NCBI RefSeq assembly: GCF_000009045.1
Contig: NC_000964.3
Location: forward strand, 992,001-1,056,000
Direction of reading: 5' to 3'
Origin: Bacillus subtilis subsp. subtilis str. 168
GTDB taxonomy: Bacteria; Bacillota; Bacilli; Bacillales; Bacillaceae
Length of the DNA stretch: 64,000 nt
Shown: positions 39,395-45,701 of the stretch, piece after piece
Numbering within the stretch: the first letter of the stretch is position 1
How the letters are laid out: each line of letters begins with the position of its first letter
Made by a program: the position numbers and the translations under genes
The notes under the pieces: generated by a model
The model's database searches: none
Told to the model about the DNA's origin: nothing
What the model saw: the letters and a program-made list of their open reading frames with translations, nothing else

Positions 39395-39994
39395 ATGTAT
39401 AAGTTTTGTGCAAATGCTTTAAAAGTTATTCTTTCTCTTCGCGGAGGAGTGAAGGTGTATAACAAAGAAAACCTTCCGGCCGATTCAGGTTTTGTCATCG
39501 CGTGTACACATTCCGGCTGGGTTGATGTGATTACACTCGGAGTCGGGATTCTTCCTTATCAAATACACTACATGGCGAAAAAAGAGCTTTTTCAAAATAA
39601 ATGGATCGGTTCGTTTCTGAAGAAAATTCATGCCTTTCCGGTAGATCGGGAAAATCCCGGGCCAAGCAGTATTAAAACGCCGATTAAGCTGCTGAAAGAA
39701 GGAGAGATCGTCGGTATCTTCCCAAGCGGAACAAGAACCTCTGAGGATGTGCCTTTGAAAAGAGGTGCGGTGACGATTGCGCAAATGGGGAAAGCGCCGC
39801 TTGTCCCCGCTGCATATCAGGGCCCTTCAAGCGGAAAAGAATTATTCAAAAAAGGAAAAATGAAGCTGATTATCGGTGAGCCTCTTCACCAGGCTGATTT
39901 TGCCCACCTGCCTTCAAAGGAAAGACTTGCAGCAATGACAGAGGCTTTGAATCAGCGGATTAAAGAACTAGAGAATAAACTTGATCAGCTATAA
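39395..39994 (+). CDS. plsC: 1-acyl-sn-glycerol-3-phosphate acyltransferase
   Basis: HSGWVD (Hx4D) and FPSGTR motifs. Confidence 0.95.
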   Translation: MYKFCANALKVILSLRGGVKVYNKENLPADSGFVIACTHSGWVDVITLGVGILPYQIHYMAKKELFQNKWIGSFLKKIHAFPVDRENPGPSSIKTPIKLLKEGEIVGIFPSGTRTSEDVPLKRGAVTIAQMGKAPLVPAAYQGPSSGKELFKKGKMKLIIGEPLHQADFAHLPSKERLAAMTEALNQRIKELENKLDQL

Positions 39995-40029
39995 GGCGTT
40001 CTGAGAGATTGTCCTGAAACTGTGAAAAT

Positions 40030-40061
40030 AAGAAAAGCACCCTATACAAGGTGCTTTTCTT
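40030..40061. terminator. Bidirectional terminator plsC/yhdP
   Basis: AAGAAAAGCACC..GGTGCTTTTCTT. Confidence 0.85.
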
Positions 40062-40062
40062 A

Positions 40063-41397
40063 TTATGCTTCCTGCTGGTTAGCTGTCTCCAGAAGTTCTT
40101 CTTCTTGAAGCTTTTTCACTTCAATATATGCGACGTGGTGGCCGTCAATTTCATTAATGATGAATTCGCAGCCCTCTTCGATGATGGAATCATCTTTTTC
40201 AACATCGTATTTTTGAGTAAGGAACCAGCCGCCGATTGTATCGACTTCTTCGTTCTCTAAATGGATGCCTAGCAGGTCGTTTACTTGGTCAATTAACACT
40301 TTTCCGTCAAGAATATAATGGCCTTCGCCGATTTTGCGGATTTCGCTAATTTCATCAATATCAAATTCGTCGCGGATTTCACCGACAATTTCCTCAATGA
40401 TGTCCTCAACCGTCACAAGCCCGGCAGTACCGCCGTATTCATCAGACAAAATGGCCATGTGGACCCTCTCTTTTTGCATTTTGACAAGCAGGTCTTGGAT
40501 CGGCGCAGATTCAATGACATGAATGATAGGGTTGACGAATTGAGAAATGGTGGAATCAACAGATACCTCACCGCTGATGCAGGCGGTCAGCACTTCTTTA
40601 ATGTTAATAACCCCGATAATGTTATCTTTATCGCCCTCTTCCACAGGGTAGCGGGTATATTTTTCAATCTGAATGATGTCCATCATTTCAGAAATCTTGA
40701 TATCATGCGGAAGGCTGACAATTTCGGTCCGCGGAATCATAATTTCTTTCGCGAGCCTGTCGTCAAATTCAAAGATTTTATTCACATATTTAAACTCTGA
40801 TTGGTTGATTTCACCGCTTTTATAGCTTTCAGACAAAATGATTCGCAGCTCTTCTTCTGAGTGAGCCAGTTCGTTTTCTGAAACGGTCTCCAGGCCAAAT
40901 GCTTTGGTCAATAACCGTGCGGAATTGTTCAAAAGCCAAATGAATGGGAACGCGATGCGGTAAAACCAAATCAGCGGTTTCGCAAACAGCATAGACACTG
41001 CTTCCGCCTTTTGGATAGCGACTGTTTTAGGTGCAAGTTCTCCGACAACAACGTGTAAGAACGTGATAATGGCATACGCAAAAATAAACGATATGACATG
41101 TGAAAGGGAACCTGGAACGTTCATTTGGACGAAAAGCGGGTGAAGCAGCCTTTCGATCGTTGATTCACCTAAAACCCCTAATCCGATGGAAGTCAATGTA
41201 ATTCCGAGCTGACACGCAGATAAATATTCATCAAGATGCGTGGTCACTTTTTTTACGGCTATTGCTGCTTTATTTCCTTCCGCGATCAGCTGATCGATCC
41301 GTGAGCCTCTGATTCTGATAATGGCAAACTCAGATGCCACGAAAAATGCCGTCAGGGCGATTAAAACAGCAACTAAAATCAAATTCACTATGTCCAA
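40063..41397 (-). CDS. yhdP: CNNM/CorC-family (DUF21-CBS-CorC) Mg2+ efflux protein (MpfA)
   Basis: [20 protein letters not shown] and DEYGGTAG motifs; TTG start. Confidence 0.94.
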
Positions 41398-41457
41398 TTA
41401 GAACCTTCACTCTAGCAATGAGAATGAAGGTAACACCTCCTGTTAGATAAAATGGTT

Positions 41458-41889
41458 TTAACTTAACAGCAGCATAAATGATTGGAACACGGCGAGCTTT
41501 TCAGGCGGGAGTTTGCTTTTCAGCTTGTCACGATCCTCGGGCTTCAGCCGTTCAAACCGATGCAAGATTCCGGAGATGTTTTGATTCATATGATCAATTT
41601 CTAATGCCAGATTTCCAATTTCATCATCAAGTTTAGCTGAAGAGGGAAACTGGTTCTCCAGTCGATCTTTAATATCGGACAGGGCCAATCGCTGCTTCTT
41701 GCAATCTACAATAAATATAAGTCGTTTGAGTGCATTTTCGTCGTAGTAACGGTAATTTGAACAGGATCTGGCCGGCGTAAGCAGACCGAGATTCGTATAA
41801 TAATCAACTGTCCGTTTCGTTACTCCGGCGAGTGCCGCTAGTTCACTGATGCGATAAGTCTCAGCCCCATCTATATCCCTCCCAACCAT
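41458..41889 (-). CDS. yhdQ: MerR-family regulator (annotated cueR); translational start doubtful
   Basis: YRISELAALAGVTKRTVDYY..GLL MerR HTH; in-frame ATG 41889 has no SD (see findings). Confidence 0.8.
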   Translation of the reverse strand: MVGRDIDGAETYRISELAALAGVTKRTVDYYTNLGLLTPARSCSNYRYYDENALKRLIFIVDCKKQRLALSDIKDRLENQFPSSAKLDDEIGNLALEIDHMNQNISGILHRFERLKPEDRDKLKSKLPPEKLAVFQSFMLLLS

Positions 41890-42045
41890 CACGTTATAGT
41901 TATGAGAATAGTTTAATATATGAACGGTGTCTTGCACAAGTTTATTGTTTTTTTTAGACCGGAATTGGAAGTTGTGGAATTCATCATCTGATTGAAGTAA
42001 CATAGGAAGATAGAATTTTCAAATTTTTATATGCGGAAGGGACAG

Positions 42046-43227
42046 ATGAAATTGGCTGGGTTATCCCGGGAAGTTGAAGAAAACTTAAATAAAGGATCAT
42101 GGATTCGCAAGCTGTTTGATGAAGGTGCAAGGCTGAAGAAGGAGTTCGGGGAAGACCAGGTATTTGATTTTTCACTCGGCAACCCGATTGTTGAACCGCC
42201 TGAAGCTTTTAAGAGAGCGTTAATAGAGGAAGCTGAAAAAGGCAGCCACGGATACATACAAAACCAAGGGCTTCTTGCAGCGAGAGAAAAAGTCGCGCAA
42301 TTTCTGGGCTCGCGTTTTGAAGCTGATTTCTCAGCGGAGCGCATCGTCATGACGGTGGGCGCGGGAGGCGCTTTGAATGTTGCGTTAAAAAGCATCGTAA
42401 ACCCTGGGGAAGAGGTCATTATTCTTGCACCTTATTTTGCCGAATATAAGTTGTATATTGAGAACTACGGGGGAAAAGCCGTCAGCTGCCCGTTGACAAG
42501 CCGGTTTGAGATCGACATTGAAGCGGTAAGGCAATCGATCACTCCACAGACGAAAGGGCTGATTCTCAATACACCGCATAACCCCACAGGCACTGTTCTC
42601 AGCCAGAAAAATATAGACGATTTAGGCGCTTTATTAAAAGAAATAGAAGAGAAGAGCGGCCAGACGATTTATGTGCTGTTTGATGAACCGTACAGTCAAT
42701 TAATCTATGATGAAGAGCTGGCAAATCCGTTTCAATCGTACCATCGTGTGATATTGGCCAGCTCATTCAGTAAAGATCTCGGCATAGCCGGAGAGCGGCT
42801 CGGGTATATCGGATTGGACAGCCGAATGCCGGATGCGGACCTTTTGATCAACGCTTTTGTGTATTGTAATCGAACGCTTGGATTTGTGAATGCCCCTGTC
42901 ATGATGCAGCGGGCTGTGGCACGAATGGATGATTTAAGAGTAGACGCGAGCGCTTATAAAGAGCGCCGGGATTTAATGGTAGACATTTTAAAAGAAGCCG
43001 GTTTTGAATTTGAAATGCCAAAGGGAGGTTTCTTTGTTTTTCCGAAATCGCCGATTGAAGATGAAGTTGCATTTTGCGTGCATGCCGCCCAAAAATACAA
43101 ATTATTAATTGTGCCGAGCAGCGGTTTTGGAATGAGCGGGCATTTCCGATTATCCTTCAGTGTGCCGATCGAGCAGATTAAAAACTCACGGGACATTTTC
43201 ATTTCTTTATATAAAGATTTTGCTTAA
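42046..43227 (+). CDS. yhdR: Class I/II PLP aminotransferase (aspartate aminotransferase-like)
   Basis: [12 protein letters not shown] and [14 protein letters not shown] motifs. Confidence 0.93.
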
Positions 43228-43239
43228 GAAGGCAAAGAA

Positions 43240-43271
43240 AAGAAAACAGTTTTCAAGGCTGTTTTCTTTTT
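43240..43271 (+). terminator. Terminator after yhdR
   Basis: AAGAAAACAGT..GGCTGTTTTCTTTTT. Confidence 0.75.
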
Positions 43272-43377
43272 ATATCCGCAAAATCCTTCCTCTTCCAATC
43301 CAGACAGGCGCAGAATTGACAAGCAGGCATGCAGTTAAGGCTTTCTTCATGATAAAAGTCTAAAAATTAAAAATCAT
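43270..43377 (-). pseudogene. Possible degraded gene fragment (yhdS position)
   Basis: 36 codons with an internal stop (MIFNF*TFIMKK..); weak resemblance to the TlpA-like 'LNFWAT' segment, from memory only. Confidence 0.25.
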
Positions 43378-43553
43378 TTTTGGAATGAGTTGTGTTACAA
43401 TAAAATATACAATTTATAATCAAACTTTGACTTTTGGAGGTGGTATGATGGGGCCCTCTGCTTAGGCAACAATACACCGCGTACCTCAATGTTAAGGAAA
43501 AATGATTATATCAGGAGGTGACTCCTTATCCTTTGTTGAGAGGATAGGGTTAA

Positions 43554-44939
43554 ATGGACGATATTGACAGTCTGATTTTAATTGGCGTGCTCATTGCTTT
43601 AACCGCGTTTTTCGTTGCAAGCGAGTTTGCGATTGTTAGAGTGAGGAGATCCAGAATAGATCAGCTTATCACAGAAGGAAACAAACGGGCGATACTCGCA
43701 AGGCGTGTCATTACAGATTTGGATGAATATTTATCCGCATCCCAGCTAGGCATTACATTGACATCAATCGGGCTTGGCGTACTGGGTGAGCCGGCCTTTG
43801 AACGGCTGCTGCATCCACTGTTTGAACCGCTCGGCTTGCCGGACTCGGTTTCACATGCAGTCTCTTTTGCAGTCGCGTACGGCTTGATCACGTTCCTGCA
43901 CGTTGTTGTAGGTGAACTGGCCCCGAAAACGGTCGCGATTCAAAAGGCAGAACAGCTGACTTTACTGATAGCGGGCCCTTTGCGTTTATTCTATTTGCTC
44001 CTGTTTCCGTTTATTTGGATCCTCAATGGATCGGCGCGGCTTTTATGCGGGATGTTCGGTTTGAAGCCTGCGTCAGAACATGATGGTTCCCATTCTGAGG
44101 AAGAACTCAGGATGCTGTTATCTGAGAGTTTAAAAAACGGAGAGATTAATCCGTCTGAATATAAATATGTGAATAAGATTTTTGAATTTGATAATCGGAT
44201 CGCCAAAGAAATTATGATACCGCGGAAGGAAATGGCTGCTGTGTCAACTGAGATGACGATGGCCGAGATGCTTGAAGTCATGCTGAAGGAAAAATACACG
44301 CGCTGGCCAGTCACAGATGGAGACAAAGACAGTGTGCTCGGTTTGGTCAATACGAAGCATTTGTTTTCTGATTTGCTGTTTATGACAGAAGAAGAACGAA
44401 TGAAGATGACGATCCATCCGTATGTGAGGCCGGTCATCGAAGTGATTGAAACGATCCCGGTTCATGACTTGCTGATTAAAATGCAGCGCGAGCGCATTCA
44501 TATGGCTATATTGTCGGATGAATACGGAGGAACCTCGGGACTTGTGACGACAGAGGATATTCTTGAGGAAATTGTCGGAGAGATCCGAGATGAATTTGAT
44601 GAAGATGAACAGCCGCTGATCCAAAAGCTTGGCGACGGCCATTATGTGATGGATGGAAAGGTTCGGATCGATCAGGTGAACAGCCTTCTTGGCGCATCGA
44701 TTCAAGAAGACGTCGATACGATCGGCGGGCTGATATTAAAAGAAAACATCGATATTGAGGCTGGTGAATCCATTCGCATCGGTTCATATACGATAAAGGT
44801 GCTGAAGATGGACGGCCGATTAATCAAGCAAATCGATATAAAAGAAGAAGCCGGCAACACAACCGGGATTACGGCGCACCACAAGCTGCCGCTGCCCGAG
44901 CCTGTGATGCTGAACAGTGCAACCTTGAGCGAGAAATAA
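43554..44939 (+). CDS. yhdT: CNNM/CorC-family transporter, paralogue of yhdP
   Basis: Same DUF21-CBS-CorC motifs as yhdP. Confidence 0.94.
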   Translation: MDDIDSLILIGVLIALTAFFVASEFAIVRVRRSRIDQLITEGNKRAILARRVITDLDEYLSASQLGITLTSIGLGVLGEPAFERLLHPLFEPLGLPDSVSHAVSFAVAYGLITFLHVVVGELAPKTVAIQKAEQLTLLIAGPLRLFYLLLFPFIWILNGSARLLCGMFGLKPASEHDGSHSEEELRMLLSESLKNGEINPSEYKYVNKIFEFDNRIAKEIMIPRKEMAAVSTEMTMAEMLEVMLKEKYTRWPVTDGDKDSVLGLVNTKHLFSDLLFMTEEERMKMTIHPYVRPVIEVIETIPVHDLLIKMQRERIHMAILSDEYGGTSGLVTTEDILEEIVGEIRDEFDEDEQPLIQKLGDGHYVMDGKVRIDQVNSLLGASIQEDVDTIGGLILKENIDIEAGESIRIGSYTIKVLKMDGRLIKQIDIKEEAGNTTGITAHHKLPLPEPVMLNSATLSEK

Positions 44940-44952
44940 GCTCAAGGTTTTT

Positions 44953-45309
44953 TTATATTGTGATTGTCCAGCCGCACCAAAATGCAAAAAGCGACCCGCA
45001 AAGTGTCAGGACGATGTACAAGATGCTTTCTTTTACACGTTTGGCCATAAGGAGTTGAATAGTTTCAACGCTGAATGTGGAAAAGGTCGTAAAGGCGCCA
45101 AAAAACCCCGTGCCAATGATAAGCGAGACCGAAGCATTTGCAACGTGAAGTCCTGTAAATATTCCGAGCCCGAGAGCTCCGAGAATATTGACTGTCAGTA
45201 TGCCAATGGGCAGGCTGAGACCTTTGGTTTTGGCGGTTATGACATTGCCAAGCCAGAAGCGAAGCATTGCGCCAAGTCCGCCCCCTATGAAAATACCCGC
45301 TAGTGTCAT
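44953..45309 (-). CDS. yhdU: Fluc/CrcB fluoride channel subunit
   Basis: GGGLGAMLR and [12 protein letters not shown] motifs. Confidence 0.92.
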
Positions 45310-45701
45310 TTTTCCTGCAGCCCCTTTCTTTGCTGAATGCCTGCTATGCGCCGTCCCACAAAAACACCAATCAGTGCAAATATGATCCCTGATATCAATG
45401 AGGCTGCCACATATAAAAGAGCCAATGAGGGTTGTCCTTGCAAAAGCATCACTGTTTCCTTAGAAAACGTGGACATTGTTGTGAAGCCTCCGCAAAAGCC
45501 GGTGCCTAAAAAAGCCGACAGCAGAGGCCGTTTTGCCCCGATCATAAAAAATCCGGTCAAAATGCCTAATAGAAGGCTGCCTGCCGCATTTTCCAGCCAG
45601 GTTGCCGCCGGGAACTGACCGGTGTGTATCCATAAGTTTAATCCGTATCGGAGGCAGGCGCCAAGCGCGCCTCCGATAAAAACCGCGCTATATATTTTCA
45701 T
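45306..45701 (-). CDS. yhdV: Fluc/CrcB fluoride channel subunit
   Basis: GGALGACLR and [12 protein letters not shown] motifs; overlaps both neighbours. Confidence 0.92.

Follow-up and report, generated by a model that had tools for sequence, protein, structure and literature searches.

The 64,000-nt stretch of the Bacillus subtilis 168 chromosome analysed here, referred to as the window and the source of all coordinates below, carries on its minus strand the gene yhdP (mpfA), whose leader RNA is the subject of this study. Pfam recognises in the yhdP product a CNNM (DUF21) domain (E-value 3.4e-51), a CBS pair (5.5e-14) and a CorC_HlyC domain (7.7e-18), in agreement with an earlier sequence-only reading of this DNA that had placed the protein in the CNNM/CorC family; its role as the Mg2+ efflux protein MpfA/YhdP is taken from the literature (PMC8844918, PMC10221552). 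The protein is 100% identical to that of locus L087 and 97% identical to its orthologs in B. tequilensis, B. inaquosorum and B. spizizenii. On the minus strand the leader runs c-AGGAGGTG-TT-ACCTTCATTCT-cattgct-AGAGTGAAGGT-TCTAA-TTG-GAC (Table 1). It consists of a distal Shine-Dalgarno (SD) sequence, AGGAGGTG, termed SD1, followed by a hairpin of 11 bp with one G.U pair and by the start codon, with d1 and d2 denoting the unpaired nucleotides between SD1 and stem and between stem and start, respectively. The sequence-only reading had described this SD, hairpin, TAA and TTG, and all are present. Its linear distance of 36 nt from the end of AGGAGGTG to the TTG and its looped-out spacer of 7 nt (2 + 5) are confirmed by count, the latter corresponding to 9 nt when measured from GGAGG. 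The in-frame TAA (41400-41398) indeed bars an N-terminal extension, and a second in-frame stop, TGA, lies at 41409-41407. The first codons TTG-GAC-ATA are conserved in relatives, with third-position variation setting in immediately downstream.

The yhdP hairpin is the minimum free energy (MFE) structure at -13.5 kcal/mol (z = -5.4), a stability reached by none of 2000 shuffles of the spacer, and is predicted to remain folded at 60 C (-7.7 kcal/mol). In an 81-nt context the leader folds at -19.6 kcal/mol (z = -2.05); the MFE structure of this longer segment adds a weak A-U/G-U helix between UCUAA and UUGGA at the start, which is not kept outside the B. subtilis group. The predicted duplex with the 16S rRNA 3' tail amounts to -13.7 kcal/mol for AGGAGGTG and -6.1 kcal/mol for a proximal GAAGGU, which is situated 6 nt before the TTG and is paired within the stem.

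Table 1. Features of the yhdP/mpfA and yhdT leaders and their surroundings (window coordinates)
Feature	Position	Strand	Remarks
SD1 AGGAGGTG	41434..41441	-	8-nt perfect complement of the 16S rRNA 3' tail
d1, TT	41432..41433	-	2 unpaired nt between SD1 and stem
Hairpin 5' arm ACCTTCATTCT	41421..41431	-	first 6 nt, ACCUUC, anti-SD-like
Loop CATTGCT (7 nt)	41414..41420	-	sequence and length vary freely among relatives
Hairpin 3' arm AGAGTGAAGGT	41403..41413	-	includes the weak proximal SD-like GAAGGT, paired
d2, TCTAA	41398..41402	-	5 unpaired nt between stem and start; in-frame TAA 41400-41398
TTG start codon of yhdP/mpfA	41395..41397	-	opens a 444-codon open reading frame
yhdP/mpfA coding sequence	40063..41397	-	444 aa; CNNM (DUF21) + CBS pair + CorC_HlyC (Pfam)
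Upstream MerR-family gene (yhdQ-type)	41458..42003	-	maximum extent of the open reading frame; true start may be further downstream inside it
yhdT-type device	43513..43556	+	AGGAGGTG 43513-43520, ACT, hairpin 43524-43549 (11 bp, loop GTTG), TTAA, ATG 43554-43556; also a covariance-model match
Paralogous coding sequence (yhdT-type)	43554..44939	+	461 aa; CNNM + CBS + CorC_HlyC (Pfam)
17-bp perfect stem with U run over the yhdP stop codon	40025..40066	.	-26.4 kcal/mol, z -5.15

The same device precedes the paralogous gene yhdT, about 2 kb from yhdP on the opposite strand and with an ATG start instead of TTG, a second occurrence within the window that the sequence-only reading had missed. The yhdT hairpin has a stem sequence unlike that of yhdP and folds at -14.7 kcal/mol (z -5.4), with one of 2000 shuffles as stable. 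Among the 110 long open reading frames (ORFs) of the window a hairpin-bridged distal GGAGG is found before only two, both of them CNNM genes.

This association with CNNM genes holds across the 835 kb examined, which comprise the window, 80 genome loci, 79 metagenome loci and 6 plasmid-collection loci. The genome loci derive from a scan of one genome per species and are orthologous at 97% down to 59% identity. They cover the B. subtilis, B. licheniformis and B. pumilus groups, Metabacillus, Cytobacillus, Peribacillus, Niallia, Neobacillus, Aeribacillus, Heyndrickxia, Paenisporosarcina, Chungangia and others, and GGAGGTG, a single hairpin and a start codon are found together in 78 of the 80. Approached from the motif, 560 kb of genome loci hold 134 GGAGGTG sites, 104 of which are split-type, meaning that a closed structure separates the SD from the start. 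All 104 stand before CNNM-type ORFs (78 orthologs, the two in the window and 24 neighbouring paralogs, with seven paralogs confirmed by Pfam), and only five of the 134 sites lie before an ORF at ordinary spacing. The independent metagenome set gives 95 sites, 74 of them split-type (72 before CNNM genes) and one ordinary, so that the pooled sets contain 229 sites with 178 split-type, 176 before CNNM genes, and six at ordinary spacing. The two split-type matches away from a CNNM start, L154:720 (+) and L149:2007 (+), both look like chance: one precedes a MerR-type gene across a 46-nt gap with a weak fold of -8.5 kcal/mol, and the other falls within a CNNM coding region.

A census from the protein side, in which split-type required a strong SD, one closed structure and a start with d1 <= 7 and d2 <= 10, places 195 of 203 CNNM-type N-termini in this class, with 145 distinct spacers. 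Of the 195, 188 have GGAGGTG as their SD; translation starts at TTG in 158, at ATG in 36 and at GTG in one. The weak TTG is kept even where the second codon differs. Taken together, the codon counts suggest that the combination of a maximal SD with a weak start is under selection. The device is present in Priestia megaterium (60% identity) and B. cereus (57%), as well as at a third B. subtilis CNNM paralog adjoining bltD (L165:248-340, NZ_CP035192.1; 61% identity), whose leader reads GGAGGTG tac [GCCTTAC taa GTAAGGC] aaatca TTG. Judging from the gene order, this paralog is probably yrkA. The arrangement is thus found in three or more of the five MpfA-family genes of B. subtilis, the sample covering all but yqhB and yugS. 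Protein and metagenome searches returned only homologs of at least 60% identity, and more distant ones were drawn from a tblastn of the plasmid collection sampled over the whole ranking. Among these the device is absent from the Staphylococcus pasteuri homolog (46% identity; GGAGGaacatatTTG), from two Paraclostridium genes (44%) and from one Deinococcus gene (32%). Paenisporosarcina belongs to the Caryophanaceae and Chungangia is placed by NCBI in Lactobacillales incertae sedis, and as both carry the device it extends slightly past Bacillaceae. From its distribution in sequence, the device appears to be an inherited feature of a clade of CNNM/MpfA-type genes (yhdP, yhdT and the third paralog) in Bacillaceae and neighbouring Bacilli. 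Three or four members of the clade have lost the hairpin, including L125 and L070, with SD-like sequences 12-13 nt from an ATG, and L046, with AAAGGAG 21 nt from the likely ATG and no clear stem; these natural hairpin-loss variants are usable as comparators.

What is constrained across this family is the unpaired spacing and not the size of the hairpin. The linear distance from SD to start ranges from 21 to 71 nt (standard deviation 6.2) across split-type relatives. The sum of d1 and d2 has a median of 9 nt (standard deviation 1.8) and barely tracks hairpin size (r = 0.27). Of the 138 distinct leaders, 124 have a d1 of 2 or 3 nt and 108 a d2 of 5-7 nt, and in no member does the helix include SD1 or the start codon. 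Stem size goes from 5 bp (L117-L130) up to about 60 nt in composite structures (L146, L116), with d1 and d2 unchanged. In L088, L089, L116, L138 and L146 a composite structure of 45-65 nt replaces the simple hairpin, with internal loops and possibly two stacked helices, and retains a d1 of 2-3 and a d2 of 6-7. Stem sequences are equally diverse (ACCTTCATTCT/AGAGTGAAGGT, CTCCTTTCTCGT/ACGGGATAAGGA, GTCTTAC/GTAAGAC and others), and compensatory variants occur even in close relatives, as with CGTTCT/AGAACG in the B. pumilus group. Every one of the 65 distinct leaders from genome loci folds with z < -2 against shuffles (mean -4.6).

Covariation supports the hairpin as the conserved structure. In a MAFFT alignment the variable stem was moved by one column between lineages, and RNAalifold then predicted just an invariant pairing of the SD with CCUU; the alignment used instead was built by per-sequence folding, a structure-consistent seed, a covariance model and Infernal realignment. 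The covariance model finds 66 matches in 572 kb, all 66 ending at CNNM start codons. Pairing holds in 94.1% of the cells of the Infernal alignment (shuffles, 83.9%), and double-change cells number 61 (shuffles, 20.1), neither value being reached in 500 shuffles. Compensatory changes affect six of the 11 stem pairs, and the covariation score of 0.380, compared with 0.05-0.11 for slid partners, was likewise reached by none of 500 shuffles. Of all stem pairs 10% are G.U, and 108 of 145 spacers fold more stably as the sense than as the antisense strand (p about 1e-12), which shows that the structure acts in the mRNA and not as a DNA palindrome.

The yhdP leader is therefore probably a split, or noncontiguous, ribosome-binding site (RBS), bridged by a hairpin in the manner of phage T4 genes 38 and 25 and conserved in Bacillaceae and some relatives. 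The SD is linearly too distant from the start, a closed stem-loop lies between the two, and the looped-out spacing falls within the range of the T4 examples (5 and 11 nt). In such a model the 30S subunit would bind the very strong distal SD AGGAGGUG, and the hairpin filling the 36-nt gap would stay folded and loop out, leaving 2 + 5 unpaired nucleotides to part the SD:anti-SD duplex from the UUG, which would thereby reach the P site. Initiation would take place with the hairpin folded, making it a required structural part of the initiation region and not an inhibitor. The proposal of the sequence-only reading that the distal SD is the working one and the hairpin is looped out gains strong support from the conserved architecture, the covariation, the constant looped-out spacing and the relatives that have no proximal SD. 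Further, about 96% of members keep the hairpin, where one deletion would be enough to yield an ordinary RBS, and its near-complete retention suggests that it offers something beyond spacing. Most plausibly this is a set-point or regulatory input on exporter synthesis, with insulation or mRNA protection as other candidates.

Several observations weigh against a split RBS, or at least against its simplest form. A pure spacer model needs neither the invariant CCUU/AAGG stem base nor an SD-like 3' arm. The looped-out distance from GGAGG to the start has a median of 11 nt (interquartile range 9-11), which is 2-3 nt above that of ordinary genes in the same sequences (median 7.5 nt, interquartile range 7-9). 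The predicted accessibility of SD1 in full-length leaders is moderate, with a mean probability of being unpaired of 0.35 (0.57 in the window). The census favoured the split label wherever several combinations of SD and start fitted, and the statistics take no account of phylogeny. The median of 11 nt equals the spacing of T4 gene 25, and if pairing with the 16S tail runs through AGGAGGUGA, the SD duplex would end 1-2 nt from the stem and d2 alone would set the distance to the P site.

The SD-like 3' arm opens a different explanation, raised in its standby form by the sequence-only reading as well, in which the weak proximal GAAGG/AAGGA is the real SD, repressed by the hairpin, and the distal AGGAGGTG serves as a standby site or as an anti-anti-SD that opens the hairpin. 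In the main yhdP and yhdT lineages the 5' arm starts with the anti-SD-like CUCCUU or ACCUUC and the 3' arm ends in AAGGA or GAAGG, so that AAGG(A/G) lies 5-7 nt before the start in most leaders of these types, with a mean 16S duplex of -5.8 to -6.3 kcal/mol; the CCUU/AAGG base that joins the arms is invariant in this main lineage. SD1 can also pair with the start of the 5' arm, as GGAGGU:ACCUUC at -6.0 kcal/mol in the nascent yhdP transcript (41426-41440 (-); the yhdT counterpart lies at 43513-43526 (+)) and as AGGAG-GUGA-CUCCU, with a GNRA-type loop, at -6 to -7 kcal/mol in most relatives, and this is exactly the pairing that RNAalifold chose on the sequence alignment. It could be relevant in co-transcriptional folding. 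However, this pairing is invariant and without covariation, is absent from several paralog lineages, and is far outcompeted by the main hairpin, which averages -13 kcal/mol against some -6 kcal/mol for the alternative. A standby model would also predict no constant d1 and d2, and the start codon is never within the helix.

A proximal SD is missing or too weak to be usable in 30 of the 138 distinct leaders. The leaders at L025:947, L047:671, L055:5221 and L074:785 and those of the GTCTTAC and GCCTTAC types have unrelated stems in which SD-like and anti-SD-like sequence are both missing, but SD1, the hairpin and both spacings are kept. With no proximal SD in these lineages, SD1 is their sole SD and reaches the start only with the hairpin folded. 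SD1 itself is kept as a 7-9 nt complement of 16S rRNA whatever comes next. Start-like triplets at canonical spacing after SD1 occur in 14 of 138 leaders compared with 30.0 +/- 4.5 in shuffles, most survivors being buried in the stem, a depletion that is expected if SD1 truly recruits ribosomes. A masked proximal SD with a distal standby site is accordingly disfavoured as the general mechanism, and we consider it unlikely, although it may apply to B. subtilis taken by itself. A ribosome standby site as such was also rejected as a candidate, given that the start codon is never in structure and that the proximal SD-like element, inside the structure where present, is missing in those 30 leaders.

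The high retention of the hairpin also suits a regulatory operator within the split RBS, of the kind known from E. coli thrS; a protein or small RNA binding there would block or promote 30S binding, and the hairpin would be kept for that partner. Retention of about 96% suggests a function beyond spacing, thrS offers a precedent for a hairpin operator within a split RBS (PMC7297116), and mpfA is reported to be induced by Mg2+. The loops are not conserved, though, and the stems are wholly different between paralog lineages. This variability makes a family-wide sequence-specific binder improbable and would fit only recognition of shape or lineage-specific partners, so that we give the operator little credence.

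Bacillus mRNAs can be stabilised by 5'-proximal ribosome binding and by 5' stem-loops, examples being the STAB-SD of cryIIIA and the aprE and ermC messages. A strong SD far from the start might likewise act with a 5'-proximal hairpin to guard the message against 5'-end-dependent decay, translation proceeding from the weak proximal site or independently of an SD. Such a stabiliser would have no need for d1 and d2 to be fixed within a few nucleotides of the start, and in many members SD1 is the sole SD. The distance between SD1 and the predicted promoters varies, and in B. subtilis the element, lying just 16 nt behind the MerR gene, need not be near a 5' end. The tight coupling of SD1 to the start codon argues that SD1 is used for initiation, and protection as the element's principal purpose is very unlikely; a stabilising role could coexist with a split RBS. 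A transcript starting at SD1, suggested by TATAAT-like boxes upstream in some genera, was rejected as the best -35/-10 pairs lie 1-40 nt from SD1 with no preferred distance. A DNA-level inverted repeat (for instance the operator of a dimeric regulator such as the adjacent MerR protein), a transcription attenuator or chance is hardly credible: beyond the repeat's position beside a MerR-family gene in B. subtilis, the G.U content and strand-asymmetric fold, the lack of repeat conservation across lineages, the absence of a MerR neighbour in most genera and the reported YhdQ-independent Mg2+ induction stand against an operator, the stem is followed by UCUAAUUGG and no U tract, with a terminator scan picking out the short SD:5'-arm pairing but not the main hairpin, and yielding 3 hits where 3.4 are expected by chance, and chance as an explanation is excluded by the fold z-scores, the census and the covariation.

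Other regulatory RNA classes were tried and set aside. An upstream ORF or leader peptide driven by SD1 would need a start codon at canonical spacing, which the window does not have and which is depleted throughout the family. An RNA thermometer or other SD sequestration is at odds with the position of SD1 and start outside a helix predicted to be folded to 60 C. For a riboswitch there is no conserved core, no conserved unpaired nucleotide and no Rfam match, neither leader matching at E <= 10 over 39500-45500. In the literature searched no leader or split RBS is described for yhdP, mpfA or CNNM genes, and the main text of a CMfinder survey of Firmicutes makes no mention of them.

The sequence-only reading had suggested that hairpin folding might serve as a Mg2+- or stress-sensitive switch. 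According to a review, Mg2+ induces expression of mpfA, and does so independently of YhdQ, the MerR-type regulator encoded next to it (PMC10221552). A Mg2+ response without a known sensor makes the leader a candidate, and we tentatively raise the idea that the split RBS itself is the Mg2+-responsive element of mpfA and its paralogs, sensing without an aptamer. A 30S initiation complex on UUG would have to form across a three-way junction of the SD:anti-SD helix, the looped-out hairpin and the short spacer, and might depend steeply on free Mg2+. Higher cytosolic Mg2+ would then give more exporter, and possibly more mRNA through ribosome protection. If true, this would explain both the YhdQ-independent induction (PMC10221552) and the retention of the hairpin (about 96%) and of UUG (81%) though any stem sequence serves. 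The hairpin has no conserved loop or bulge able to make a ligand pocket. We regard Mg2+ sensing as doubtful, because the sequence itself holds no pointer to Mg2+.

The surroundings of yhdP are compact. The leader occupies the entire 60-nt intergenic gap to the MerR-family gene, whose stop codon lies 16 nt upstream of SD1, and no promoter-like site was found in this gap. Counted from its first ATG, the MerR-family ORF has a length of 181 aa; as the helix-turn-helix domain begins only at residue 50, translation probably starts at a Met further in. Gaballa et al. (2003) reportedly linked YhdQ to the copper induction of copZA. A 2023 review lists it as a regulator of unknown function (PMC10221552). 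Farther along lies a divergent aminotransferase gene. At the other end of yhdP, the stem at 40025-40066 is likely, on its predicted fold, a bidirectional intrinsic terminator common to yhdP and a convergent 199-aa ORF (39395-39994, +). The same stem gives spurious low-score miRNA and antitoxin matches in Rfam on both strands.

So far the evidence for split RBSs has come from two genes of phage T4, with a few special cases besides, and the CNNM leaders would add a cellular, family-wide example in the best-studied Gram-positive model. Their roughly 145 natural variants amount to a mutagenesis series, with stems from 5 bp to about 60 nt, with and without a proximal SD-like arm, and with UUG or AUG, from which simple rules emerge: 2-3 nt between SD and stem, 5-7 nt between stem and start, and any stem sequence. 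The device sits on the gene of the main Mg2+ exporter and so offers a concrete candidate Mg2+ sensor. It also misleads gene callers. One gene (the P0055/P0056 pair) is annotated at both 441 aa (MDILFNLF...) and 457 aa (MKRKKGNEPFLFVFHPLDILFNLF...), the longer model reading 16 codons through the hairpin, and near-identical orthologs are annotated at 430-463 aa; starts of this type will be misplaced or scored too low by models of RBS spacing. As a context-independent expression part for Bacillus, an RBS insulated by a hairpin and equipped with a maximal SD could be useful.

Among known leaders, a loose parallel is Salmonella mgpA (yoaE) under the YoaL leader peptide, which also places a Mg2+-stress gene with a CorC domain under translation-level leader control (PMC12421838). 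Control there acts through a translated upstream ORF, which the CNNM leader does not contain; start codons after SD1 are depleted and stops close extensions in B. subtilis. Like the M-box (ykoK) Mg2+ riboswitch, the yhdP leader is a cis-acting RNA before a Mg2+ transport gene, and mpfA is reported to be Mg2+-responsive (PMC10221552). The M-box turns importers off at high Mg2+, whereas mpfA encodes an exporter reported to be induced, and the CNNM leader has no conserved multi-helix aptamer, conserved unpaired nucleotides or Rfam match. With the standby sites of the de Smit and van Duin model, such as MS2 coat and tisB (PMC5934652), it has in common a ribosome-binding element outside a stable structure near the start. 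In standby sites the SD and/or the start are inside structure that must unfold, and in the CNNM leaders the helix never includes either of them. As in E. coli thrS, a stable hairpin interrupts the ribosome-binding region and is tolerated by the 30S subunit, with the hairpin providing a regulatory handle in thrS (PMC7297116). However, the thrS SD is at normal distance and the hairpin parts it from an upstream enhancer region, whereas the CNNM hairpin lies between SD and start. The thrS hairpin is also a tRNA-like operator of conserved sequence bound by ThrRS, unlike the CNNM hairpin, which has no conserved sequence.

The closest likeness is to the split RBSs of T4, work on which is reportedly that of Gold (1988), Nivinskas et al. 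(1999) and Malys and Nivinskas (2009). In T4 a stem-loop cuts the SD-to-start spacing from 22 to 5 nt in gene 38 and from 27 to 11 nt in gene 25, initiation falls when the stem is destabilised, and close T-even phages share the structure of gene 25 (PMC3014915, PMC7297116). The CNNM leaders resemble both genes in that the SD is linearly too far away and a stable stem-loop restores a functional spacing. For the T4 genes the structure has been shown to enhance initiation, and the CNNM leaders are known from comparison of sequences. Unlike the T4 examples, the CNNM device has a maximal SD of 8-9 nt abutting the helix (d1 = 2-3) and mostly a UUG start, and its stem is free in size, from 5 bp to about 60 nt, with a base that mimics the SD:anti-SD duplex in the main lineage. 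The CNNM device, in contrast to that of T4, is cellular and belongs to one protein family, in which it has been kept through paralog duplications and across many genera.

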